The notes under the pieces were generated by a model. It had not been told where the DNA came from, did no database searches, and saw nothing but the letters and a program-made list of their open reading frames with translations. A stretch of 64,000 nt of DNA, from assembly GCF_000002075.1 (NCBI RefSeq), contig NW_004797607.1, positions 274,289 to 338,288 of the forward strand, in the 5' to 3' direction. Below are positions 18,901 through 53,200 of this stretch, piece by piece (the first letter of the stretch is position 1; each line of letters starts with the position of its first letter). Source of the stretch: Aplysia californica (Eukaryota). Both the position numbers and the translations under genes were made by a program.

Positions 18901-21900
18901 TGTGTCAACGAACTCGGTGACCTCATGGAGTGGTTTGAGAAAGGTGATGACAAACTAAGGGCCATGTCGCCTGTCAGTGACGAACCAGCCAAGCTGCAGG
19001 CTCAATTGGCAGAAATTAAAGTGAGTGTGACCATTGCTGGTAGTTTTGATGCTGTTGCTGCTGATGTAGTTGTGGTGGTTGTTCATTTTTGTCATTGTTT
19101 GATAGTGTTTCTGCTACAGCTGGGTTTGTGTACTTCGGCACAAGAGCTGATTGGGAAGGATAAGGGTTTTAATGATCTGGAATACACATCCTTCAGTGGG
19201 TTTAGTTGTTTTGTATGGCTTTAGTTTTTTATGCTGAGGGATAGACGTCTAGTAAATAAATATTGGTGTAAAGTGTGTGTTTGGTGGTCTCTGAGGAAGA
19301 AAGCAAAATATTTTGAGTTGTTCCGGATATTTATCAGGACAAGAGAATCTGGAGAAAAAAAGAGATGCAGAGAGTTTCGGGAGAAAGTTATTAGAAAAAA
19401 AAGAAAGACAAAATGTGATGGAAAGAAAGAGAGAGGGTTGAGATAAAGAAAGAGTGAGGAAGAAAAAAGAGAAAGAAATAAGGGAGAGAAAGAGGGGGAT
19501 AAGGAACAAGCAAGAGAGAAGAGGAGAGCTATTCTCGTGAACTGTTCTTTGTTGTCTTGCCAGATCAATGCAGAGTTCTGGGGGTGACATTACTAAAACT
19601 TATCATATTCATCTTGTCCAGATTGTTTATTATTGTATTGAACAATGAACTGGCGTACAGAATGCTTTCTCCTATCAAAGAGCATTAACATTTGCAGGAA
19701 AGGGTTTTTATTTCAATACTCTTCAAACATGTCACATTTACCCTTGTTTTTCTTTCATAGGCCTTCAATGAAGAGGTTGGCAACCAGCGCTCCAACATGC
19801 GAGACGCAGTGACGGCTGGCAAGAAGCTGATACGTGAGGCAAGTGTTGAGGACGAGGATGCCATCAGAGAGAAGATGGAGCAGCTCAAGGATAAGTCCGA
19901 AGCTGTTGCCGGGGCAACGGGAGAGAGACTCAGTCAACTTGAGCAGGCTTTGCCTCTGGCCAAGTGAGTAACAGTGTAGTTTAGTGAGAAAAACTGAATT
20001 TGAATTTATTTCTTTTACCTTGTCCCACTTTGTGTGTGAAATGTCAGCATTTCTGTATACTTGCTCTCTTTTGTAGTATGTTTTATGGGCAGTAAGAAGA
20101 GAAGTAACTCTTTGCTTTTGAGTGCTTTGTCTCCTTCTTTTTAAAGTTTGTGCTGTGTTTGTCTATTCCTAGAAAACTGTGACTATTGGGCTGAGTAAAT
20201 TTGACAGCTGTCTTTTCTGTGTATAGCATTCAAATCGACAATAAGGGCAATGTGTGGTCCAGGTGTTGAGATCTAAAGTTTATTCCTGAAGTAATCAAAA
20301 CTGAATAATTGTGTGAAAAGTGTGACTCTGATGAGGTATGCTACTTCTGTTTCTTTTTATTTCTTTTTTGGTCCTCATCCGTTACAGGAAAGATAGGTTT
20401 GTCGATAGAGGGCACCACTGGTAGGTCCAACTTCTTTTTCTCTCCTGTTGTTGCTTCTGTCTGTTTATCTTGCTATTCTCCAACAGTAAATGGCCACCAT
20501 AGAGTCGACGTACATCTGTCGGCTCAATTTAAACTAGACAACTAAAAGTAGGTTTGCAATCTCTGTGAGCTACAACTGTTTTCTTGGTGTTTGGCAGATG
20601 CTCTGGTATGGTTTGCTCCTTCTTTCAAACATTTATTGTTCTTATCTCTCCGCCTTCTTTTCTGTGTTTGTTACTTTCTTGTGAAGCCTCAGATCTTCAG
20701 CACTAATGACCTTATTGTGTTGCAAGTGCTGTAAAACTCTTACTGAAACTAAAATTTAACAAAACAATTGTTGTTCCTTGCAGGTCTTTCAAGGAGACTC
20801 ACGAGGAGCTAGTGGACTGGCTGGCAGAAGTGGAGCCTGCCCTGGCTGAGCTGAGTGTCATGTCAGTCGACGCCGACCAGGTCAAGAAGCAACAAGAGAG
20901 CGTCAAGGTGAGGGTCTCTAGGATTTTGTTTTTCTTTAAATGTTGGTGTTTTAACCCGCCATGGATGCAAATTAGATAAATTTGAAAGTGGGCTTTATTC
21001 TTGTCTCTGGGGGCCAATCCGAACTGAGAGGGATTCAACATTACAGTAAAAAATATGGAGATAATCGATAAAAATTCTCCTCACTTGGGAATCAAACTTG
21101 GGTCTTCTGTGTGCAATGGCTGTTTCCTACTATTTGACTTGTTGGTGTATAATTATGAATTGCGCTTGTCTCCGTCAACCACAGGCCTTGAAGCAGGATG
21201 TTGCGGACCATAAGCCCACAGTGGACAGACTCAACAAGACGGGAACAGTCCTGGCCCAGCTGGTCAGCCCCGAGGCGGCCAACGTAGTGCACGACAAACT
21301 GGACAGTGACAACAGCCGCATGGAGGATGTGAGGACGGCCGTCAGGGAGCGGTCAAACTCCATTGATATTGCCATGCAGCAGTCTGCCGAGGTGAGTGTC
21401 TCAGGCAACCTCTGAGATGATTGACTGATTGTCATTTGGAACTGTTTTGTGTCCACAAGCAGACACAATCTAGATAATTTTGTATTTGGTTTGCTTCAGT
21501 CTGTTTTAGTTTGCCAGCTAGTGTTAGCCCAGGCTGTGTGAGGTACTATGAGCCAGCAGAAAGATGGAGGTTGTTATTTAAATATTTAAAACCAATAATT
21601 TTGCATAGAACGCAAAAAGCCTGACCATTTTGCCCTAGACACCAGTACATCTGAGTAGAACACTAGAAAGAGAACAATTTATCCTTAGACAAAATGTGAA
21701 ATAATGTGAACTATCAGGAACAACTGAGATTGATCCATTTTTTAGGGAGTGAACAGCAACATGCCCAACAAATGATTCTATAATTCTTATTACACATGTT
21801 GTTTAATTAATATATGCTTGCATAAGTCAAAATGTAATGTTTTGCGGTTGGGCTGGGTTTTTTTTACAGTTTACGGATAAACTGGAAGACATGTTGGAGA

Positions 21901-36900: not shown

Positions 36901-39900
36901 TTTCTTCACTTCAACTCTGATCAAATTTTTTTTTTGAGGTAGTTGTTGTACCTGATTTTTTTCAAAACGTGTGGGACAGCAGAGATATTTTTGTCATGTT
37001 TTCTAGGGCTTCCAAAATGAGATGTCCTCCAAACAGCCAGATGTGGACAGACTAACCAAGGCAGACAAGAGGAGAGCAGGGTCTGTGACAGATTCTTCCC
37101 ACATTCCAGTGTTCCGTGGTTCCGGTCGGTCCACTCCGAGGTCGAGAATTCCTACCATCCGGTAAGTGAATTTTAGTGAAATAATATTGTTGTTGGCTCC
37201 GAACTTCCATTTATATCACTGATAACAAGGGCAATAAAAAAAATTTTGATGTCTGAATTAAATATCATTTACAGTATCTAGCCTCTTGTGTGACTTGAGA
37301 CCTATGTGCCCTTTGTCAAGATTATACATAAATATGTTTCCTTTCAGAGCAGAAACAATTTATCTGGTGTTTGGTTTTAATCTCATTTACCAGTTTCCCT
37401 TGCTCTTTTTTGTTGCTGTTTTCTTTGTGACCTTTGAATGAAAAAGGAAAATACTTGTTTCCCCATCCTCCAGAGTTGACCGAGCTGACAGTTCCGGCCG
37501 AAGGACACCTGACCACCATGGACGTAGGACACCAGAACACTTCTCCGGCCGCCGTACACCAGACATGAGTGGTCGCAGAACGCCTGATGTTTCAGGGCGG
37601 GTAACTCCTGACCACCACTCAGGTCGCAGAACGCCAGACCACCACACCGGTCGGCGAACGCCTGAGCCCGCCTTCAACAACCCACGCGTGGGAGGCCTCT
37701 TTAACAAGTGGCGTCAAGTCTGGCTTATGGCCATGGAGAGACAGCGCAAACTACAAGATGCTCTCGACTACTTGAATGAGGTAAGTTTTCTACAACACAG
37801 CTGTGGGAAATTCATTTTGCTACACAATTTTGTGGGAAATTCATTTTGCTACACAATTTTCCAGTAGACAGTTCAGTACTCACCAGATGTTTTCTTAGCT
37901 GTACTTGTTTAGTTGAAAGGGTTTTTTATAGGTGTCATCAGTTACTATTTGTTCTGCTATGTTTCTTTGGAAATACGATGTTTAATTTTTCATGCTTGCA
38001 ATAATAAAATCCGGGATTATTCATAAAAGTATTGTAGAAATGCCATTACGTTTTAAACTGAAGCATCCTTGAGCACTTGTCTTTTGTCCTACATGTCCTT
38101 ATATCTATCAATACTTCAAGTTTCCATGATGAATAGCGAAAGTTCTCTGAGAATTTTTAGATACTGTCATAACTTGCACTTTGCTTTTTTCTTTTTGTAT
38201 ATCATTGGCATAAACGTCTCCTTTTTCACAGATAGAGCAACGTAAAGCTAAGGTTTGTCATGAGTTGGTTGCCACACAATTTTTTCCGCACAGTCATTTC
38301 ATCTATTTGACCAGTGTTATTTCTGTGTTCATGTTTGACTGGATGGGTTTTTTCAGGACTTTGGATTCTTTGATGATAACTCCAAACTATTGCTCCTACT
38401 CACAATGAAAATTTGTAAAGTTTCGCTTCGTGTGGATAAGTGTTATCTTCCCATCCTCCTACTGGTGTTTCAGATCAAAGAAAGATTTTTTTTTCTGTTT
38501 AAATTGGTAATGGGATTTGTTAAAATGATATTACCCTATACCGCGCTTCAGTGAACAGGATATTTAAGTACTCTGAATTATGCTTTAGTAGATCGTAATG
38601 ATGAACAAATTGACCTCACATTTACGTTCATTATGATGCATCGTCTGTCACAGATATCTGACATTTCCAACTTACAAAAATTTCTTTCTTTTCTATTTTT
38701 TTCACAATATTTCTATTATCATTTAATAAACTTACATTTTATTTCATCATAACTCTTGAGGCCCTATGAAACTGACAAACTTTGTTGTTTATTGATTGAG
38801 GGCTTAAGTTCTGTTTCTTATACATCTGTGACATCTGTGAAAGCAATTTTGTGTGTGTGTGTTCAACTGACTATATTTAAACAAAAGTGTGTGTCACCAG
38901 CGAAAGCTTTTCATCAATATAGCTATTGAGTGAATATATTCGTACACATTGATGTTTGCAGTTTTGGAGCACTGTCAAATAAACATGTCTGAATTTTGTC
39001 AAGATTCTTTCTATCATGGCTTTTCCAAGAAAATGATTTGTTCTCTCAAAAAAAGCTCTTTTTTTTAGTTTACCGGGTTGAATACAAACTGTTTTAACAC
39101 TTTCTACTAACTTAAACTTTTTTTTTTTTTTTTTTGAAATGGCACAAGTATTAGACATTGTGTTCAACTAAATTGACGCTGTGACTTGAAAGGTGACATG
39201 GTGGTAGCAGACTTATTAGTTGTAATGAAAATTGGGAAATACATTACTGTTATTCAAGATTTCATTTTGGACGCTTACTCATCTCACTGTGTGGACACTT
39301 ACTTTTTAAAGACTGTCGAAAAGGAGAAACTTTTTGTAGTCATGAATGAAATCGATACTAAAATAGTTTTCGACAAAGTCATTCATTATTTGAATTGCAA
39401 AAACAGATTCAACGTAAATGACAGAATCCTGCTCCAATTTTTTATGCTTAAGTGACATACATGCAGTTATTTTGTCTTTTGAACCCATTATTGTTCCTCT
39501 TGTCAAATAGAAGTATTCCCTTTTTTTAATTAGAGTTGAAAAAAAGTTCTAATAGTTTGAGGATGGCAGTGGATAGTCAGGTTATTCCTGTTTTTTTTGT
39601 AGATGATTAGGTCATGGATTCTGATTCTTCCAAACACTTTCTCTGTGTTTTGTTGGGTTTTTTTATCCATTCTTGTTTTAAAATTTTTTTGCTCAGAATT
39701 ATGTTTTCATTTTTCATCCACTTATTAATTTAAAGCAAGACATTAAAGTGCATTCTCTATAAATCTGTTGACCAAGTACGGGAATTATGTGTTGGATGTT
39801 GCTCTTGGCAACTGGTTGCACTGTCTTTCTCATGATATTCATTTCATTTGTTGATTTCACAATTATGATTCTGTCAGTTTCACATCAGAAACATTTTGTT

Positions 39901-41977
39901 CAAGCATTCCTATTTTTAAGGAGATTTTAGATATTGAAATTTGTTACAGAAATAGAACCATATAGTTTTTGTTTGTCTCGAAAGAAAGGGGTTAAGAGGC
40001 ACAAATATTTCCGAACAACCCAATCCACAGATACTAGTAAGTGAAATATTTTTTTGTCACTCGTACTGTCTCCAAGTGTAGAAAATTAGGGTCATAGTAA
40101 GCTGGAAAACATTTTGGTCAACCAAATCATTTACAAATACTTTTAGAGGCTCACATGCGCTTTCATTCATTCTCACGTTTGCAGTTTGAGACAATCTAAT
40201 TGGGAGAAAGCCCCTAGCAGTGTTCTTAAAATGTTACTTTTTTCCCAAGGTTTGATTGTTGACGTTTTCGTCTTTTCCCTCCTGTACAGTTGGAGAGGTT
40301 GAAAAACTTTGAATTTGACGACTGGCGCAAGCGTTACCTCAGGTGGATGCACCACAACAAGGCTCGCATCATGGACTTCTTCCGTCGCCAGGATCGGGAC
40401 CGAGATGGACGTGTCACACGCCAGGAGTTCATTGACGGAATCCTCATGTCCAGTAAGTCACATAAATCCCAAGTATCATTTCACTGAATCTGGCACATTT
40501 TATGTGAAAGGTATGAGTGTCTTGCAGCCTGTTAAAATTCGCCAGATCACTTCATTTTAATGATTACCACAAAAGCACCCAAAGAGTAAAAGGCAGGGGG
40601 TTAGATGGCACTGCTGTTTGGGCTTTGTTCTTATGTCTGCTTCTCTTCCTTTTTCCTTTCACTAAATGACCGTTATTGTGTTGATATACATTTCTTTACT
40701 TAAACAAAGAAAAAACAAGAATAAAATCATACTGCACATTGAGGCTTCATCACTTTTTTTTTACCATTTCCATCTTGTAGACTGGGCTATTTCCCCCTTT
40801 CAAAGTATTTTTGCCATTCCAGAATTAATATCTACAGTGAAAATTAAATTTTATATAGGCCTACTTACTTTTTCCTTTCATATTTGCCTTTTTCATTGTG
40901 TTTAGAGAGACGCATTTAATTTTTGTAATTTGATTTTTTTTTTCAGCTGTAGGGCTTGTGTAGTATGTTTGAAGAAGTGTTTTGGGCTACAAGTGCATCC
41001 AACAGTTCATTTTAGTGAGACAAAACATATGACTGACGGTTTAGACTGTTTGTCTCTGAACACATTTAGGCAGGATCCATGCCTGTCTGTAGCAATCTGG
41101 GTGTCACTCTACCTCAAAATATTTCCATAAGGTTTCTGAGGTTAATGGATATGTGCTGAATTTTTATACTGCTTTCTTCCCTGCAAGTGAAATGTATTTT
41201 GTAATCTTGATTACCCAACAGGTCTACTGTACATTTTTCAGTTTGAGAGTTTTGTGAACTCACATTTTAAACTTTTTTTCGAGCAGAATTCCCTACGTCT
41301 AGGCCAGAGATGGAGGCTGTTGCTGACATCTTTGACAAAGATGGTGACGGTTTCATCAACTACAAGGAATTTGTGTCAGCTCTTAGGCCTGACAGAGATG
41401 TAAGTACTGGGACATTTGATCTTTAACTTTTTTTTTCTTCAGGTTTATGGATAGGCCTATCACAGATTATTTTGCTTTGGTAACTTAAAAATTGTAATTG
41501 AATTAACTCTGTTAATGGTGTTCTTGAATGAAGAGAGGTCCTATCTTCTATTGAAACAGGATATTGTCATTTAAAAAATAAAAGTTCTGATATTTACATT
41601 CTACCAAGTTAGTTAGCTCTGATTGTTTGATGCTTGATTTGTTGTGGGCATCAGGTTTTATTATTCCAATTCTAAACTTACTTTTTAGTTTTAAGATTAT
41701 CTGCACTCTGTCTTATTGGAGACAAAGATTTATTTTCTGATCTGACTCGTGGTATGCTTTATGTTGAAAAGAGGGTACATCTCAAATTTTGTTAACTTTC
41801 TAACATGGACTTGTGTTTTTGCTCTCAGGTGAAACCAGAGACAGAGTCGGAGAAAATCATGGATGAGGTCAAACGCCAGGTGTCCAAGTGCACATGTGTG
41901 AAACAATTCAAGATACACAAGATTGGAGAGGGAAAATACAGAGTGAGTCTCTTTTTTTTGTCCTTATTGTGTGAGTC

Positions 41978-42009
<32 letters not shown>

Positions 42010-45000
42010 CGGGGGGGTTGTGTTTGGAGAGAGCAAATTTTTTTAGAGTCTCAAGATGTGTTAATGCATGTTTGTGAGTGTGTATTTATGTGTATTAAAG
42101 TGAAAGGGCACGAAAGAGAGAGAGAGATGGGGTCTTTGGTTGGTAGAGAGAGAAGGAACAGGCATCACAATATTAGAGGGCAAAGGTAGAGTAAATCTCT
42201 CTGGACTAATGAGTTTGTGTTTTGTTCTCATAGTCCGTGCTTATGTAACCTCAGTACTTTAGTAACTATGTTTTGTCTGTTTCGAATCTTTTCAAAATGA
42301 GGAGAGAGGGGGAGTGCTTATAGATGAAATATTCTGTCAATTTCCCTGTAAATATCATCTTCTTCTGTTTCCCTTCAGTTCGGTGATTCTCAGAAACTTC
42401 GCCTGGTCCGCATCCTTCGTAGCACAGTGATGGTGCGTGTCGGAGGTGGCTGGATCGCTTTGGACGAGTTCCTGGTCAAGAATGATCCGTGCAGAGGTAA
42501 ATGTTTTTTCTTTTCATTCTAGCTTTTGAAAGAAGCATACAGTATTTTCATAGCTTTTGGTTATGTATTTAAAAAATGTTTTTATGTGACTTTGTTAATG
42601 TTTGTTCCTGTGTTTCCCTTGTATTGATAAATAATTCCATATCTGAATGTGTTTTCAAACATATGAGGTAGGGTGTATTCTGGAAGCTCTTTTAAGAGCG
42701 TGTAGGTTCCAGTTTTCACAGCTACTGTGTAGAAATGTCGGTGCAGTTCCAAGCAATTGATTGTTTGGTATGAATATATAAGGCTTTAGGTACTACCATA
42801 CTAATTAGTACGAGGCAGTCTAACATTCTGTGCTTTGATATCTGCAGTATCATTGTAGAACTAGTAATAGTTTTTTCCAAAAACTTTTTTCGTCTTTTAA
42901 AAAAAAATATTATTCCAAAAAATGTGTCGAGTAGAAATTGATAATTTTAGCCCACTTTAAAGCTTTACAATAACAGTTTGAGAGGCGCTGACTTAAGCAG
43001 TTGGGTCTCTAGATAAAAAGCCTAATTTTAAAAGTCTAGTTTTTTTTTACTTCTTTTATCCCTTACAACTTCATCTCTGTGAAAAATATGCATGCTCAGC
43101 TATACGTTACCCATCCATGGCAGATGCAACTCATTTTCACTGCCGCGTATATATATGAATAGATTATTCCTTTTTCCTCTTGCCCTGATGTTATGACTTA
43201 CATTATGCTGTATACTGATGTATTTTCATCCTTCTTTTCCCCGTGAACACGAACAATCTCTGTGGCCTCTCAGAGTTTGTTGAGATTGCTGGTAAAATTG
43301 AATTTTCTTATATATCCCATGAAAGGCAGCGGGACATTTTAATTCTTTTTCACAGAACACTGACCTTCATAACACACACACACACTGGTGCGCAGACACA
43401 CACACTTACAAACACACAAACAGACACACGTATGCACGCACATGTGCGTGCTCACATCATGCCCACTCGCACTTACCCACACAGATGCACTAAACTGCTT
43501 GCTTTGTGTTATGGTATCGCAGAGGTTCATGATTTTGTTTATCAGATGATATCAGATGATATCAACTCACGGTCTCAGACAATCCTCCCTACATCAATTG
43601 TGTTTGATTTGCCCTTTTATTTTCATTTTACATTTTCGCCCCTAGCTGTAGTTTTTAGTTGTTTTTTTGTGTGGTTTTTTTCTTTTACAAGCCTATTACC
43701 AAAGACTGTGAACTACAAGACTGTTGTTTCGGTTGTTTTTATTGATTTGTGCAACTTCATATAGGCTAATATTGGCCTAGTTGTGAAATACTTTTTCTTT
43801 CACCAGCATTTATCTTTATGCCGGAAAATTGTGTTCCACAGAAAGAGAACCTTTTGAAAATGTGCGTACTAAGCTGATATAACAGTTTGTTCAGAAATAG
43901 CGAAAAATTGGAGGATGAAAGTAAATACGTGTAATTATGAGCTTTCAGAAAAGCAGAATGCTTGCATATTACTGTAAGCGATTTCTGTGTTATTTGCTGA
44001 AATAACATGAAAGAGCTATGTGTGCCTCCATTTGTTGTGGTAGGCAAGGTAGTCAGGTCACGCAGCACAGTTCAGTCATTTGTCTTATAGTTCACAGTCT
44101 TGAATAAGATTTAGCTGCCTTTGTTAATCCATGATCATTTTGTTTTAGTACACAGGGAAAAGAATAGATTGAATGTCTATGAGGACATTAACATGCTAGG
44201 AATGGCCCTTATGACATGCTTCAAGTTTAGTGAACATTTATTCAAGTATTGTGGGGTATTGATGTGGATGCAAGAGGCAAGATCTATCTGTTGACCCATG
44301 TCATCAACAGAACCTGTGAAGTCAGAATAGCTAAAAGTTTGGGGTCTTTTTTTCTTTCATTAACATGGTTCAAGAACTAGATTGTATTTGGGTTTTTCGT
44401 CTTGTTTTCTTTTGTTTTTGTTTGGGTTTTTTAGGGTGGAGGGAGGGAGGGAGGGTTCATTTGTGATGATTTGATGTATTTCAACAGGATATTCATTGGG
44501 AATTTTGAAGCCATAATGAAATATTTTTCTTTAGGAATTGCAGGTGCTCAGTGCTAAAAAAAAAATGATGCTGTTTGATTATGGGGAAAGCAGCTTTGTT
44601 TTAATTTTTACTTCTATCATTTATTTACCTTTTGCATTTGAAACCATTCAGAATTTCGAAAACTGTCACCCTACCGTAAGTATAGAACAGCATAATCAAA
44701 TTTATGAAACGTGTATTGAGTTGTCTCCGTGTACGCAAACACACACACACACAACTTGGCGGATAGGGTGCGCGGTAGCCCATGTACTGGCCTTTCCCCC
44801 TATCATTACCCTCCAGCCCTCATCATATATAGTAATGTCACTCAACCGTTATATACATCAACCCCTCTGCCCTTCCCCCCCACTTGATCTCATTTTTCTT
44901 TAGCGGAAAACGTGACCAAAGCAATCTTGTGTGTTGGCAAGGTTTCCTCCTCTAACACTGAGCCGTATTTGTGATACTTTAAAAAAAATTATTCATTCAT

Positions 45001-47253
45001 TGCTTCAGCAGTGACAAATTTATTGTATAGGGAATGTTGGAAGAAACGTTGCTCATGCACTTGCACTTGGGGGGGGGGGGGGGGGGGGGTTCTTGTAATT
45101 GTCTTTGTTAATGAATAGAAATGTTTTTCGTGGGTAGTGTTAATTGTTTGTAGGATTTTTTCTTTCTTTTCTGACCAATGTATTGAAGACAGTATTTTCA
45201 TAACTTACTCAACCCGTCAATTGGTGGGGGTGGGGAGGTTTCATCTTATGTAGCGGCGGAAAGAGTAAGACAACGGTCAGAAAAATTAGTGATGTAATGA
45301 TATAATGATTTCGCATGTACGTGAACAAGGTCACCATCAGACAACTTAAACCTCCAATTTTAATTATTTACATTGAAAGATTCAAAGCAACAGTGCCTAA
45401 TATCACGGTAGAGTTTAAAGTGACAGCCAAGTGTTCATATTTCCTGACCCTCTCCCATGCTAGTTTTTCATACACACTCACCATCCCTGACCCCCACTCA
45501 CCACCAAAACCCATATACTTATCATCCCCTCCCCTGGCACTTACCATATTCAGTTCAAATTATGTCCAGTAACGTAGTTCATATTTCTTTGTAGTTTTAG
45601 ATACCCTTAATCTTGTTCTTGTTCCCCACAAACATAGGCCTATTGTTTTTATTGCTACAACTTTTTTCTGCCTTTTTATCTTTTCTTCGCTCTGTGAGCA
45701 TCTGGACAAACTTGTATAAGAAAGCTTGTGTTTTTCTTGCATCTTTGGGGGTTTCAAATCAATCAGACCCAAAATATTGTTTGCGGAGTATCAAAACTGC
45801 ACCTTTAACTCATTTAAGATCATGCCAGACTGTGATGTGTTGAGCTGATTGTGAAGATAAAGCTTTCATGACTCTTCACTCTGAGCAACTCCTGTTGGAA
45901 ATCTACTTTTTTATTCAAATAAGAGGTCATGGCTCTCAGACTATAATCATAGAGTGTTGAAAGGGGCGTTTGGACAAAGAAATGTGTTGTTGATTCAAAG
46001 TAGAGATTACTTGTAAAAGATTTTACCAATTGAGCTGGGATTAGAGATTTGAATTTATATTATCTTAAAAGTAGATAGCTTGGCAGAGTTGTAACTTGTT
46101 GATCATGGTCAATAAAAACCATGAATATTATGTTGCAGCAATAACATCCTGCTTTTTGGGGGGGGGCTATCCTGTAATATTACTATAACAATGACTGAAA
46201 GGGAAGTTATTGTAGGTTTACAGGTTAAATTCAGGTAGATGCAAAACTAAATGAGTTTGGTCCCTGGTCAGTTGCTGCTGAGGTGTGAAGCCTCTTCAAC
46301 TTGAAGTCCAGCAAATTAATGTTGCAGGTTGTGGTCTTCAGAGTAAATATGCTGTGTTTACACCCCCCCTCCCCCCCACCTTGTTTTTTTATATAATAAT
46401 ACATTATTGTTCATTCATGGAGTATTAATCAATGGTTATATATTTTGTCATTTTTTTCTGTGTATTTTACTGCGGGCACTAACATCCAGGGGGGACAGTC
46501 ACTACGGGAAACAACCTCCGCTAAGATCCCCCCCCATACCTACATGACACTGACTGCTGTAATAATCATCCCTTGCTTTGTGCCACTGGAAGTTTTAGGG
46601 TTACCGGCTAACGTTTTATTTATCATTTGGTAACACACCCACAGGCTAGGAGAGCTTAAGCGTAACCGTCGAACACAGATACGCCTCTCTGTGTTCATGT
46701 CCACTCGTTGCTTTTCGCTGCCAAAATGCAAGTCTTACTGCTTTTGTCAATCATACACACTGCTATAGGCTAGAATAATGATGTACATTTTAGTTTGGTT
46801 GGTTTTGCTTTGGATTTGGATTGGGGGTTTTTTTGTAATGTAAATTTTGATCTGTACATGACCAAGGCTGTCTCATGGATTAATTGTAATTAATGGCATT
46901 GTGGAGATGTAAAGGATGCTCTTGTGCCTTCACAACACTTTCTTCAACATCAGATAGGGGACAGGAGGTGTGGGTGAACTTTTTAAAAATTAATTTAATC
47001 AAGCCAACATTGGACACACCTGGTTTGTTTGGGGGTTTTTTAAAATGAAATTCAGCGACTTTTTGGGAAATCCAAGTGTATCAGTTGACATCTGACCTAA
47101 GACTTTTGATTTTTCCTGCAGTAATAAGTCTTCATCCTGCGAAAATCCAATTTTGCTGTCTCTCTCTTTGTCTCTCTAACTCTTCTGTCTTTTTGTCTTT
47201 CTGTCTGCCTGTCTGTCTTTGTCTCTTTCTCTCTCTCTCTCTCTGTGTCTCTC

Positions 47254-47297
<44 letters not shown>

Positions 47298-50200
47298 CCC
47301 CCCGCCCCCTTCTGTTTAGTGTATTATGCACTTTTACCCAGCCTGTGTGTTCTTCTCTCCTCTACATCGCCATACCTGTTGTTAGTATGTAGAAATAACA
47401 CCTTTTTTTTTACTAAGTGAGACTGACATAATATCATGATCATGGTCACATAATTTCACATATTGTTCTCTCTCTCTCTTTCTCTGATAATAATATCGTA
47501 GTGTGTTTCTGTATTTTGTGTGCACATTACAACTTCGTCGAGGAATGTAAAACCTCTAATTACTCCTGGCACTGCCAGAAGAGCTAACTTTAGCTTTAGC
47601 TGATGACTTTACTTATTATCTATGTCTGTCAATGCTCAGGTAGAAAAATTGAGCTACCGTATCATCACAATACTATATTAGTGGCTGAAAATAGAATCGT
47701 TTTATTTTTTTGGTTGTTTGTTTAAAGTTAAAGTCATCCAGTGTACATTTCTGTGGTTCTATTAATTTCTTGGACCCATTACACTGAAGTACTTTACCGA
47801 AGAAATCTGTATTCAGTGTATCTGGAGTCGACAAATTTTCACGTTTTTTTTAAAGCAAAGAATGTTCGTTTTTATTTTGATTTATGTAATGATGGACTCT
47901 TGGGTATATTATAAACAATTATAAAGATTTTTTTGCTTCTTTAGTTATTGATCCTGTAGTGGGGGGAGGGAGGGGGGGGGGTATATGCAGTGTTAACCTG
48001 AGTCATTTGTCCACTCTGGATGTTGTTTTTGTCTTGAGTGTGATACTCTTTGTTGAAATATTTATTCATGAAGGTCTTTCAGTTTTACTTCTACAGGTAT
48101 ATGACACATTGTGTTACTGGCTGATATTACGGATAACTTTTGCCATTCAGTATTTGACTTTGTTCAAGTCTCAATCTCTCCACAGTTTCTTGCAGGTCAC
48201 TCAGTGCATCAACTTGAGTTGGTTGAAGTTCAGATCCCCATCTCTTTTGTGATCAGTATTTTCCATTACTGATGTCGGAGATTTTCTCAAAATGTTATGG
48301 CTTACAATCGTGTGTAAATGTTAGTTTCTCATTTGTGTACTTGTTTTCTCTCTGAAAAGTTGGCCTTTGGAGGAGGAAGCAGTTCCGTTTGAAACGGCGC
48401 TATCTTCACCATCAAAATCCTGATGAATGTAGGTTGACCTTCACCTTCAGCATGTCGTGTGCTGAAGACGTTGCTGTTTCTTGTGCCTGGCTCCTCCTGC
48501 TCCCCTTTCCATTCAGTTTTTGTCATGGCTTTTGACCTTTTTTTATTCCTTCGTGGAAAAATTCCTGGTTTTTAACTGGCCTGAGTTTGTCTTGTAATGT
48601 TTTTGTGTCTCTTAATGTTGCCCGATTTATTTTCATGTGCATGTTGTCAAGATGTGTGAGTAGGCCTGAGTCCAAAGGTTCCTTCAGCAGCAGTTTGCAT
48701 TGTAAAAGAAACCTTTTTCCGCGGGGCCAGCAATGTGAAATGGACTTACGCTTTTTAATTAATTTTTTTTTTTTTTTTTTCTCTGATGAAGTGATAATTT
48801 GAAAATGAAAGTTTTGTCGCTTTATGGTTCAAGTTTATCTTTAAAACATTTTCCTGTCGATGTTGTACTGAAGCTTTATGTAAATTCTAACTTGTCGGGA
48901 ATGTTTCTTTTGCTGCATTATTTTTCTCAGATCTTTTAATACTATCTAAATGCCAACTGTGTCTCTTTGAATTGAGAAATGTCTGACTTTCTCTCCAAAG
49001 ATATTTGTGTGCATTTTGTGTGCTAATTATTTTTTTCGAGATCTTTGCTTGGACCATTTTGTTATATATGTGTTGTGGGATAGGCCGGAGTTTGATGTTC
49101 CCATAGAAGTGGTACCTGTGCTTGATGTGACCCTTTTGGTTTCATTCCAGATGTGAATTTTGTCTACTGTTTTGTTTATTTCATGAGTATTTTAGTGGAT
49201 GTCCCAATTGAGCTGTTATAAATTGGGGAAACTGAATCATCTAATAAAGTGTGAATAGTATTAGTATGAACGCTGAGACTGAAATGATAGCTATGAGACT
49301 CAGCTACTGTGAATGCACACACTGTGAGCCATGTAGCCCTGTTGTTCCACACTGATAGCATTACCTCATGAAGTAGGCCAGAGAATGTAGGAATTTGGCC
49401 CTCTTATTTGTTTTGTCACTAACCATGAAAATATTCCTGTCGTCCAACACCGCTGGTATAAAAGCCAAATATACAGAAAAGGTACTGTAATTATAAGACC
49501 TTTCAAAATAAAGATGAAGCTGATTACAATGAAGCCGTTCACAAAAACAGAACTAAAAAGTTGGTGAAGAAAAGAAAAAAACAGAACTAAAAAGTTTGTG
49601 AAGAAAAGAATAAAGTTAAAAAGCTGTAGAGAAGTAAAGAAGAGGAGGCTGTCATGTTGTCTCTTTGTTGATGTGGCTAACTTATCGTTGCCACAATCTA
49701 TTTTGTTCCTCAATATTTAAAACAGAATAAAATGTTTGCCTTGATAGGAGTGCCAACAATAAATTCTTTAATTTGTCAAGTTTAGAGAATCACAAATACT
49801 ACCTTATGCAGTTGCAAGCGCCGTAAAACCTCTACTAAAACTAAAATCACAAATTTCTTTGTGCCCTTGATAGAGGATGCAAAGTTAAAGCTTTGCATGA
49901 TGACATAGTAAACAGAAATGGAGTAGTTACTAACAATGAACCGAAAATAGGACTGTTGGTAAACTAAATTATGAAAATGGGATATCTGCATAGAAAGGAA
50001 CTTTCTTGTACTGATATTGTCTTATGAAATTAAAGTATAAAGAGAGGTTGAGACCATTTGAAAAAAAAAATATATTTATTATAGCATAATAATATGATAT
50101 TTATTTCCTGGGATATGATAACCTTTCGCCTTCTCAGCTATAGTTGAATATGGGGGGGGAGGGGGGGATTTTTTTAATTTTCCCTGTCCTCTACCCTTTT

Positions 50201-53200
50201 CTTTGCATTTTGCATTTGTATTTTTTATTAATTCTGGAATGTGTCACCATGTCCATGTGTGAAAGTATATAAGTAAGTACGTGTAATTTTGACTCACAGT
50301 CTCCCCACAACTCCTTTCCTTTTCACCTCTACTGAAATTACCCATGGTTCTGTTTGTATTTTTGCCACTTCATAATGAAGGTAAAAATTATCTTTCTATA
50401 AAACTCTTGGTTAAAAGAGAAATGTAAATCCCTGAATATTTTGGGATGAAAATGTCTGTTCATCTGACAGTGCATTACATGTACTATGATTTGCTTATCA
50501 TGGCTTTCAATTTTAATACCAAAATGTTGGTTTCTTTTCTTTATTTTTTTGTGCTTCACGCTGTTTTCAGGTTTTTATTATGTTCCCTTGTCTTGTATTT
50601 TCTTAGATGTTTTATTACGTGTACACTTATTTTTATTGTCCCAGCAAAAGACCTGTGATATATCATTGTTTCAAAAGATGTCCGATTTGTCACTAACCGG
50701 CATGGAACCTTGCGGATTTCATCACTCACAACTTTATGTCTTGATGTTGTCCCTGGACTTACAGATGCTTTATTTGTTCTCTTGAGCTTTCCCAGTTATG
50801 AACATTGCTGTTCACCGTATATTTGTTGTTCTTTGGAAAAGGGTTTTAGGAATTGTTAAAAGTTTTGTCACAGGTTGCCACATCACAATTTTTTTTCTTC
50901 GTATAACGTGTAGGTTCATGTTAAGCAATCTAAAAAATTCGCTCCGTTCATTATTTTGTATGAATAATAGTGCAGAGGTTTATTCGTAATTTATTTGATT
51001 TTTCAGGGTTTCTTTCTTATGTTGGGTTGAGATTTTACTCTCTCTTTTTTGAAGGGATCAGTTTTGTTATGTTGAGAAAGCAGTATGAATGGAAGGAGAA
51101 GGTTGAGAGTGTAAGAAAAAATATTCTCATGTTTCTGAAATGTTCTGCTTTGCTTTGTAATCATAATAGATCTCTAGTGAATTACTTTTTTTTTTTCAAA
51201 ATCTAATTTAGTAGATCTTGTGGTTTTGAAATGGTTCAACATTCTGACCTTCTCTTCTCTCCCAACAGCCAAAGGTCGGACAAATGTGGAGCTTCGTGAG
51301 AACTTTGTTCTGGCACAGGGTGTGAGTCAGTCCATGGCAGGTTTTGTGTCCAAGTCTCCTGCTGGCAGTTCCAGTGGCTCGTCCTACTCAGGCCGGTCAA
51401 ACAGCACAGCTAGCGGACCTGTATCTAAGGTTAGACTGATCCTACTGGCTACTCATCACCTCAGTTGAATAATATTCTGTTTCAGCTTTTCACAAAACTT
51501 GACCTGCTGCTATATACTGTGCTTCTGGAATAACATTTTCTCGATATTCCCTACTTTTCAAGTTTGAAAGTCAACTATGACAAATTCCTTGAACTGATTA
51601 ATCTTATTGTTCTGTATCCTCTCAAAGTGCGACCAGTATATCAAATTTTAATTAAAAAGTTGGAATTATTTTGGGAAAAGAACACTTTTGTACAGGAGGG
51701 ATGAATTGTAAATAATTTTGAAAAAGATAAACAAAAAGGGTTGAGGATTGGACTTTCATGTTCTTAAAAATTTTCTTTTTTCATCTTACAAATTCAAAAT
51801 GTAGGCCTACTTATGAATAGTAAGTGGCTCTGTTTCCATTGTCCTTTCAAGATAGTGTGCATCATGATCTTATACTTATAGTGCTGGGATGTCAAACAAA
51901 AGTATGGCATGCTGCAGAAAAATAGTTAGTTGTCCCATATTTCAAGACCATAAGGAATGATAATGCCCCAAGTCCCATCCCTAATCATTTGAATCTTTCA
52001 GAATTGTATCCATGTTCTGTGTCTTAGTTTGTTTTGGACAATTTATACTCTTTTTTGTCATGATATGGCTCATAGGTGAGAGAAAAGAGCATCGGCCAGT
52101 CACCATGGAAACAGCGGACAAAGACGTCAGTTGACGGGGAGGTGCATCAGATCATGTCTCACACAGAACCAGATGGAACCAGACTCATGAGGCACAAGGT
52201 CACTCGAGATCTTCATAGTCCTCGCAGCCTGCAAAGCCCAGGTCAGTCGTACAAAAGATCTTTGACCACCTTGATACAATCACATTTGTATACCCTTTAC
52301 ACAAGGCTTAAGCTGCGGGTGGTTGGCAGGTGCTCTAGTGTGGTTTGCTCCTTTTTTCCTATCAAACATCTGTTATCCTGATCTCTCCTCCTTCTGTTTT
52401 TGTGTTGTAACACCTCTAATCTTGGGCTTTTATATGACCTTATTGTGTTGCAAGTGCTGTAAAACTTTCTAAAACTAAATCTAAAAACAATGCTAACCCA
52501 CATGTATATTTTCCTGAGTCCCTGTTCGCCAGGCCTATTCAGTTCTCTCACAAGGCACCAGCCACCTCAACCCAGTCATGTATTTTTACTGTAATCTAGC
52601 CAATTGTCTCTGAAAAATATTTTAGGGACCCAATATTTTAACGTGTTGTCTGGGGCTCTGGTGATCTAGAGTTTAAGGTGTATGCCTCTCATTCAATAGG
52701 TCCTGGGTTCAAATCCGGATAAGGACTGAAAAATGTTCTGCTCTAAAATGTTCTCCTTTCACATCCTTTCCTGCTCTCTGACAATGTCTTTTCATCTGCC
52801 TCCGTCTCCACTTTTTGCCCCTACCCCCTCCTCTGGGCACCTGACTCTTTTTACAGCCTTTCTACTGCTACTCCTTGGCTCCTTCTTACTACTGTCTTTC
52901 AGCCACACCCCTGATCTCATGGTAGGTAAGATCTACACCTAGCCTTCTCGGATAAGGGCAAAAAATCTCACGGGTCCCGTATGCAAGTTGCGCACTTTAA
53001 AGATCCTTTGGTGGTCTAAAATCGATAAGAGTAGACTTCAGCCACCAGGCGGGCAAAATCCAAAATTTCCTACCAACTAAAAGTGTTCACTTTGTCCCAC
53101 ACGCTCATATGTACTTTTGCAGTTGCGAGCGCCGTAAAACACTTGCCAACAAAATGTTGTCTTCTAAAACTTCAGTGTAGAGCTGTATAGAATTATTTTG

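Follow-up and report, generated by a model that had tools for sequence, protein, structure and literature searches.

The window analysed here, a stretch of 64,000 nucleotides (nt) from the sea hare Aplysia californica (assembly of 927 Mb in 4332 contigs), carries on its + strand the 3' part of a spectraplakin gene of the MACF1/dystonin/Shot type. We consider the interval 42497-51268 of this gene, which lies between the last exon of the GAR domain (ending …DPCR) and the tail exon that follows it (AKGRTN…). With a probability of roughly 0.8, we conclude that the interval contains two genuine, conserved and frame-preserving cassette exons, of 18 and 69 nt, and that two further candidates for such exons are chance segments. 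The original prediction saw here a single long intron holding a bank of at least four cassettes. Axon growth, the migration of cells and the integrity of tissues depend on spectraplakins as links from actin to microtubules, and the GAR domain together with the tail forms their microtubule-binding end. The features of the interval and its borders are as follows.

42379..42496, + strand: exon 50, the last GAR-domain exon, ending in LVKNDPCR and the first base of a split codon (read from the sequence)
42497..43273, + strand: intron between exon 50 and the microexon, with GT at 42497 and AG at 43272-43273; the first part of a 5863-nt intron if the microexon is skipped
43274..43291, + strand: candidate 1, a putative microexon of 18 nt (EFVEIA, phase 1-1), from conservation in Bulinus and an Arion isoform
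43292..43319, + strand: conserved intron block, GTAAAAT...TATCCCA, directly past the weak microexon donor (aligned with Bulinus)
44652..44675, + strand: candidate 2 (EFRKLSPY), taken as a chance AG..GT segment
45554..45568, + strand: candidate 3 (VQIMS), taken as a chance AG..GT segment
48360..48428, + strand: candidate 4, the 69-nt cassette exon (23 residues, phase 1-1, net charge +5), from an RNA contig and conservation
48429..51268, + strand: intron of 2840 nt between the 69-nt exon and exon 51; the X7 RNA contig goes from 48428 to exon 51
51269..51429, + strand: exon 51, the start of the C-terminal tail (C-tail), (A/S)…GPVSK (read from the sequence)

The exons in between GAR domain and tail

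RNA was mapped to 42440-48439. This stretch takes in the last part of exon 50 and each of the four candidates, with exon 51 lying beyond it. An RNA contig of the X7 sample (depth 428, where intronic contigs of the same run have 3-9) joins 42496 to 48360 over GT..AG, and past 48428 it continues with CCAAAGGTCGGACAAATGTGGAGCTTCGTG, which is 51269-51298, 30 letters identical to the start of exon 51. The contig therefore reads exon 50–candidate 4–exon 51. The 42496–48360 joint is also found in one raw polyA read of run X21. Because RNA uses 48360-48428 as an exon, the single 8.8-kb intron first proposed has to be replaced by two introns or more: two, of 5863 and 2840 nt, or three when the 18-nt exon is used. 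That the interval after the GAR domain is unusually long is borne out: by tblastn with the Arion vulgaris ortholog, the gaps between the exons of this gene are typically 0.27-1.24 kb, with two of 1.7 and 2.5 kb, versus 5.86 and 2.84 kb here.

The junction itself allows both inclusion and skipping in the frame. Exon 50 ends with GAT CCG TGC AGA G, followed by gtaaat, and exon 51 is preceded by cccaacag and opens with CC AAA GGT CGG. Together they make a phase-1 junction, and when they are joined directly the split codon is the universal Ala codon (G|CC); inclusion of the 69-nt exon switches this codon to Ser (T|CC). Exon 50 matches the GAR chains of MACF1 in the PDB (5ve9_C and 5x57_A) with E about 1e-20. 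These chains terminate 2 and 4 residues past DPCR, and the junction is therefore at the very end of the GAR fold. The Asp and Cys of DPC are presumably zinc ligands of this domain.

The comparison between species points to the same 69-nt exon. Using P0131, a partial protein of the land snail Candidula with an exon-50 match, as the query, we obtain the Arion vulgaris dystonin P0151 and the Bulinus truncatus model P0152, both of which read DPCR-VGLWR(R/H)…(N/S)TEE-(P/S)KGRTN. The 23-residue insert of Aplysia contains seven Arg/Lys, two acidic residues, one Trp, one Phe and one Tyr; its first 14-17 residues are conserved, whereas the end differs from species to species in both length and sequence. 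Of the 17 codons that can be aligned with Bulinus, 7 are changed, six of them synonymously. The exon is kept by protein-level selection in Bulinus, in Arion and in four further invertebrate assemblies, at least one of which is near a bivalve. Homologous exons flanked by AG/GT lie in the same intron of loci L003 (84 nt, VGLWKEDRLRQRSRPRYK...), L004 (57 nt, VGVWRRNRFRFKRRHCPHR), L005 (57 nt, VGLRRRIRFKVAVANPEDL) and L006 (57 nt, VGVWRRNRFRFKYRTALAQ), so that the exons of Bulinus and of these four loci all have AG/GT borders and lengths divisible by 3. L006 is nearest to the bivalve Dreissena, while L004 and L005 are about equally near to Dreissena and Arion. The proposed set of exons was originally called lineage-specific, which does not hold: the 69-nt type is also present in gastropods other than Aplysia, in a bivalve assembly resembling Dreissena and in additional invertebrate assemblies, and at this junction vertebrates, too, have an exon that is optional.

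The acceptor of this exon (48352-48359) is unusual. It ends in AAG, and the A at position -3 is present in five of the six species compared (Aplysia, L001 of Bulinus, and L003-L006). None of the 31 ordinary acceptors of the gene has an A there; all 31 have C or T. A weak acceptor conserved in this manner is a usual mark of a regulated exon and suggests that the 69-nt exon is of this kind.

Isoforms with and without the cassettes between GAR and C-tail are present in Arion, among transcript-derived proteins of the 90%-identity cluster of the Arion protein. P0349 reads DPCR|AKGRTN and has neither exon; P0350 and P0151 read DPCR|VGLW...TEE|PKGRTN and have the 69-nt type alone; and P0351 reads DPCR|EFVEIA|VGLW...TEE|PKGRTN and has both. 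The sole difference between P0349 and P0350 is the 22-residue insert with the junction residue, and the sole difference between P0151 and P0351 is EFVEIA, which is the exact peptide of candidate 1. The combinatorial use that had been proposed for this region is thus found in Arion, in three combinations.

Candidate 1 was also found by aligning the intron with that of another snail. The Bulinus locus (L001) has an intron of 3.8 kb from exon 50 to the basic exon and one of 2.9 kb from there to exon 51. Compared with it at the DNA level and in translation, the Aplysia interval has colinear blocks with E < 0.001 only at exon 50, at candidates 1 and 4 and at exon 51. The cross-species check that was originally suggested therefore gives conservation peaks on candidates 1 and 4 and none on candidates 2 and 3; in 48429..51268 there is no further block conserved with Bulinus. 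The 27 nt made of AG, the 18-nt microexon and GTAAAAT occur as a single copy in the Bulinus intron, in colinear position and with one mismatch, a synonymous GAG>GAA. The whole block (43272-43319 versus 19237-19283 of the Bulinus locus) is 85% identical by blastn (E 1.7e-8), and the rest of the 42497..43273 intron does not align with the Bulinus intron. From this conservation and the Arion isoform, the segment 43274-43291 is judged to be a real and optional microexon.

The conservation with Bulinus reaches about 28 nt into the intron downstream of the microexon (43292-43319, corresponding to L001:19257-19283), with the pattern GTAAAAT..AATTT..TTA.TATCCCA. This block may be a splicing control element. 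A search for an RNA pairing partner gives no standout and none common to Aplysia and Bulinus, and the block matches no Rfam family. An upstream UGC/polypyrimidine enhancer is not seen in the upstream 100 nt, which are not conserved and contain TGC twice in Aplysia versus 0 times in Bulinus.

Frame, splice sites and RNA coverage as guides to the exons

All four proposed segments exist as described: they are flanked by AG..GT, have a length of 3n, are free of stops and are in phase 1-1. The question is how much this description means. With the same rule and lengths of 9-300 nt, the interval contains 514 segments, versus 449 +/- 54 in Markov shuffles, and its reverse complement contains 391. The bare criterion of frame and AG..GT is at chance level and has no power, and the rule by which the four were selected falls with it.

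Splice-site scores help little. When matrices are trained on the gene's own sites (31 acceptors, 32 donors), the leave-one-out medians are 8.3 for acceptors and 10.2 for donors, and the acceptor/donor scores of candidates 1 to 4 are 5.1/2.2, 3.8/3.2, 1.0/0.5 and 1.0/3.8. With these gene-trained matrices, every in-frame segment of the interval stays below the 10th percentile of real sites at its acceptor, its donor or both. The two exons that we regard as real rank 8th and 18th of 551 by site score, and candidate 3 ranks 46th. The scores are weak for all four candidates and barely discriminate the real from the false.

Candidates 2 and 3 fail elsewhere as well. Neither has a colinear block in Bulinus (blastn or tblastx), an Arion isoform or an RNA joint; candidate 2 has both site scores below the 10th percentile, and those of candidate 3 are the 1.0 and 0.5 given above. 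Since about 500 chance segments occur in the interval, we take both as chance, with at most a very slight prospect for either of being a species-specific exon. Of the proposed bank of at least four cassettes, candidates 1 and 4 accordingly stay and the other two, which show no conservation, isoform or spliced read, are given up. That all four segments, perhaps with more, form a combinatorial bank is very improbable: they do satisfy frame and AG/GT, and the two real exons also score weakly, so that weak scores do not exclude others, but the same rule is fitted by chance some 500 times and candidates 2 and 3 lack any counterpart in Bulinus DNA, Bulinus translation, Arion or RNA. For annotation there are two lessons. 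Frame with AG/GT alone does not identify microexons, as about 500 segments here fit by chance and two are real; and the "long intron" here hides two small exons, which simple models pass over.

The interval is mostly unique sequence; sampled parts and all four candidate regions are single-copy in the genome, and an Rfam scan of it gives zero matches. The only clear dispersed repeat is the CT-rich 47156-47294, of which the rest of the genome holds at least 90 scored copies. What looks like RNA depth in the interval is mostly on (AC)n at 43396-43429 and around 44753 and on the CT-rich repeat region at 47150-47490, and the two (AC)n microsatellites would mislead readers of a coverage track. On the CT-rich region (47150-47490) polyA reads pile up, mostly in one orientation and with many joints that go back, so that related copies are transcribed somewhere.

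Optional use and possible effects of the inserts

The reading that we favour would work as follows. Peptides of 6 and 23 residues would be inserted right after DPCR, where the GAR fold ends, and before the conserved (A)KGRTN that opens the microtubule/EB1-binding tail. Alternative splicing would give at least three proteins, with neither exon, with the 69-nt exon alone, or with both. We infer that in some cells of Aplysia, too, the 69-nt exon is left out and the microexon is taken in. The basic and aromatic insert of 23 residues (net +5), next to the lattice-binding GAR domain, could alter the contact of GAR and tail with the acidic microtubule surface or with a partner, and the acidic-hydrophobic insert of six residues could modify the effect of the basic one. 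Because complementary charge is what binds the GAR domain to the lattice of microtubules (PMC12084551), the likeliest effect would be that the GAR-tail unit is changed in its geometry or in its affinity for microtubules, or else gains a docking site; we hold this to be possible, at odds clearly below even.

Several observations weigh against this reading. In the Aplysia RNA, the 69-nt exon is seen included only, and the X7 contig is unbranched at the junction, so that skipping is rare or absent in the X7 sample. Of the RNA check that was suggested originally, the spliced joint for candidate 4 is obtained and joints to candidates 1-3 are not, which at the depth of about 0.1 on exon 50 in the raw polyA runs X21-X23 is weak evidence; this depth is too thin to quantify inclusion versus skipping, and no Aplysia read or contig contains the microexon. 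Nor was the microexon found outside Aplysia, Bulinus and Arion, in L003-L006 or in the first 10 kb of the Candidula intron (a stretch in which neither exon occurs and which is uninformative). As to function, the basic insert does not exceed shuffles in hydrophobic moment, and AlphaFold2 of Arion P0350 (36 aligned sequences) gives a predicted local distance difference test score (pLDDT) below 50 over much of GAR and insert. All C-tail isoforms of mouse bundle microtubules in transfected cells (PMC4171495), and the original statement that splicing here tunes microtubule binding can be kept only as a conjecture. Two structural ideas for the basic insert are set aside: an amphipathic helix has no support from the hydrophobic moment, and the helix predicted by AlphaFold2 is meaningless at this pLDDT.

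The strongest of the alternatives is that the 69-nt exon is constitutive in Aplysia, and that the "long intron" is simply two ordinary introns with a small exon that was missed and at most the microexon being optional. This would account for the RNA just described, since both Aplysia RNA observations at the junction, one X7 contig and one X21 read, include the exon and the contig does not branch there, and for the inclusion of the 69-nt type in the Bulinus gene model and in the long Arion proteins. We find it improbable, however. Arion P0349 is without the exon and otherwise equal to P0350, and the weak AAG acceptor is kept in five of six species, unlike all 31 other acceptors of the gene. In addition, DPCR|AKGRTN is the reading of the Dreissena model P0154 and, among 119 other proteins listed, of 76, and exons 50 and 51 join in frame through the universal Ala codon.

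A still less probable alternative concerns the microexon, for which the block 43272-43319 would be an intronic control element in Aplysia (e.g., an enhancer or silencer of the downstream exon) and not an exon there. It would explain why no Aplysia read splices the microexon and why the conservation extends 28 nt beyond a donor, GTAAAAT, that is weak (score 2.2). However, Bulinus retains the 18 nt together with their AG and GT, with a synonymous change as the sole difference, and the mRNA-derived Arion protein P0351 has the exact EFVEIA at the exact junction.

Splicing at the same junction in other animals

An optional exon after the GAR domain has a precedent. Exon alpha of mouse Dst (BPAG1a/b) and Macf1 is alternatively spliced and was described together with exon beta (Poliakova et al. 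2014, PLoS One 9:e107535; PMC4171495). In vertebrate proteins we find an insert exactly at DPCR|..|A(K/R)GRTN, starting with Val, which in MACF1 is VHHPG.K..R.DSSSSIS and which DST also carries; isoforms with and without it coexist. That this insert corresponds to exon alpha is a tentative identification made here. We know of no role for this type of optional exon in mouse Dst or Macf1.

The mollusc exons resemble exon alpha in that they occupy the same phase-1 junction directly after DPCR and keep the frame. They differ in that the vertebrate insert is rich in His and Ser and the mollusc insert is rich in Arg/Lys with Trp and Phe; and gastropods have the extra 18-nt microexon upstream of the 69-nt exon, where vertebrates have exon beta further downstream. 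By eye, the mollusc insert has in common with exon alpha only the initial Val and, at corresponding spacing, one Lys and one Arg, and the Val at the start of the vertebrate inserts is expected from the split codon of the same phase-1 intron. The two sequences show no significant likeness, and the mollusc exon is therefore classed with exon alpha in kind and position and not as its ortholog. A bolder idea is that the post-GAR junction is an ancient bilaterian splicing switch, in which one ancestral cassette that controls the engagement of GAR and tail with microtubules would have given rise both to the basic exon of molluscs (VG[LV]W + Arg/Lys) and to exon alpha (VHH.G.K..R + Ser-rich), and the gastropod microexon would be a second setting added later; we regard this as doubtful.

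The 18-nt exon may also be compared with the microexons of animals, which are at most 27 nt long and are familiar from neural programmes of splicing. It is like them in having a length of 18 nt and 3n, in being highly conserved together with flanking intron, and in adding a few residues beside a folded domain of a cytoskeletal protein. It is unlike the neural microexons in that its conserved flank is downstream and not upstream. Microexons of the SRRM4 type have a UGC-rich upstream signal, which is not conserved here.

Arthropods appear to use the junction in yet another way. Some arthropod-like proteins, from mites and others (P0164, which is Panonychus citri isoform X2, and P0175), diverge immediately after DPCR and lack the AKGRTN exon, which suggests that arthropod spectraplakins have an alternative tail-start exon at this junction. 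It would be the same splicing choice point, but with the AKGRTN exon replaced rather than preceded by a cassette. The intron after DPCR is about 110 nt in a compact genome (L011:10001-10500), 312 nt in Priapulus (L012:35885-36196) and 6.8-8.8 kb in the cassette-bearing snails. No cassette is found in those two short introns or in the short contigs L009 and L010. In the genomic fragment P0133 the intron is apparently absent, and exon 50 runs straight into AKGRTN.

We found no literature on the mollusc exons. Their isoforms are already in public protein sets, unannotated (Arion in UniProt, the Bulinus model in GenBank). The sea-hare exons are best seen as one more example of a splicing choice already known for this junction, with unrelated sequences and an added microexon. 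A basic exon that is under selection in molluscs and has a weak splice site, together with a gastropod microexon, suggests that the linker between GAR and tail is itself regulated, and the growth cones and large identified neurons of Aplysia make it well suited for probing the effects of the inserts.

The remainder of the gene is in agreement with its assignment. The exons were searched individually, and joined readings were taken from natural database proteins or made only to complete a split codon. By tblastn, Arion dystonin P0351 covers the window exon by exon with 60-98% identity, and it matches exon 51 with 70% over 57 residues. The Pfam domains of the orthologs are spectrin, EF-hand and GAS2 (PF02187), in keeping with the C-terminal module of spectraplakins, where spectrin repeats precede a pair of EF-hands and the GAR (GAS2-related) domain. 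The frame of the last exon contains a Ser/Arg/Gly-rich tail with an SxIP motif (predicted to bind EB1) followed by a stop, and it aligns with the Arion tail ...KISRIPKVSPTKKK. Searches with exon 50 give genomic fragments of exon size by the hundreds, with the pattern Q|FGDSQ...DPCR|G, so the same exon boundaries occur in many animal genomes and the phase-1 intron position is therefore old; the borders of exon 51 are likewise matched by exon-sized fragments in other invertebrate genomes. Both searches returned mainly genomic open-reading-frame fragments that read into the intron, and they speak for conservation of the boundaries, with no information on splicing. The 27-nt microexon site has no match with up to 7 mismatches in the other loci compared and none with up to 6 elsewhere in the window. 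The second-largest gap between matched exons, 37795-40287 (2.5 kb), is crossed by the alignment of Arion P0351 without missing residues. An array of the peptide SGRRTP(D/E) is located at 37463-37795, in the region of the last spectrin repeat; it is also present in the Candidula (P0131, near residue 1700) and Arion orthologs and is thus conserved among gastropods.

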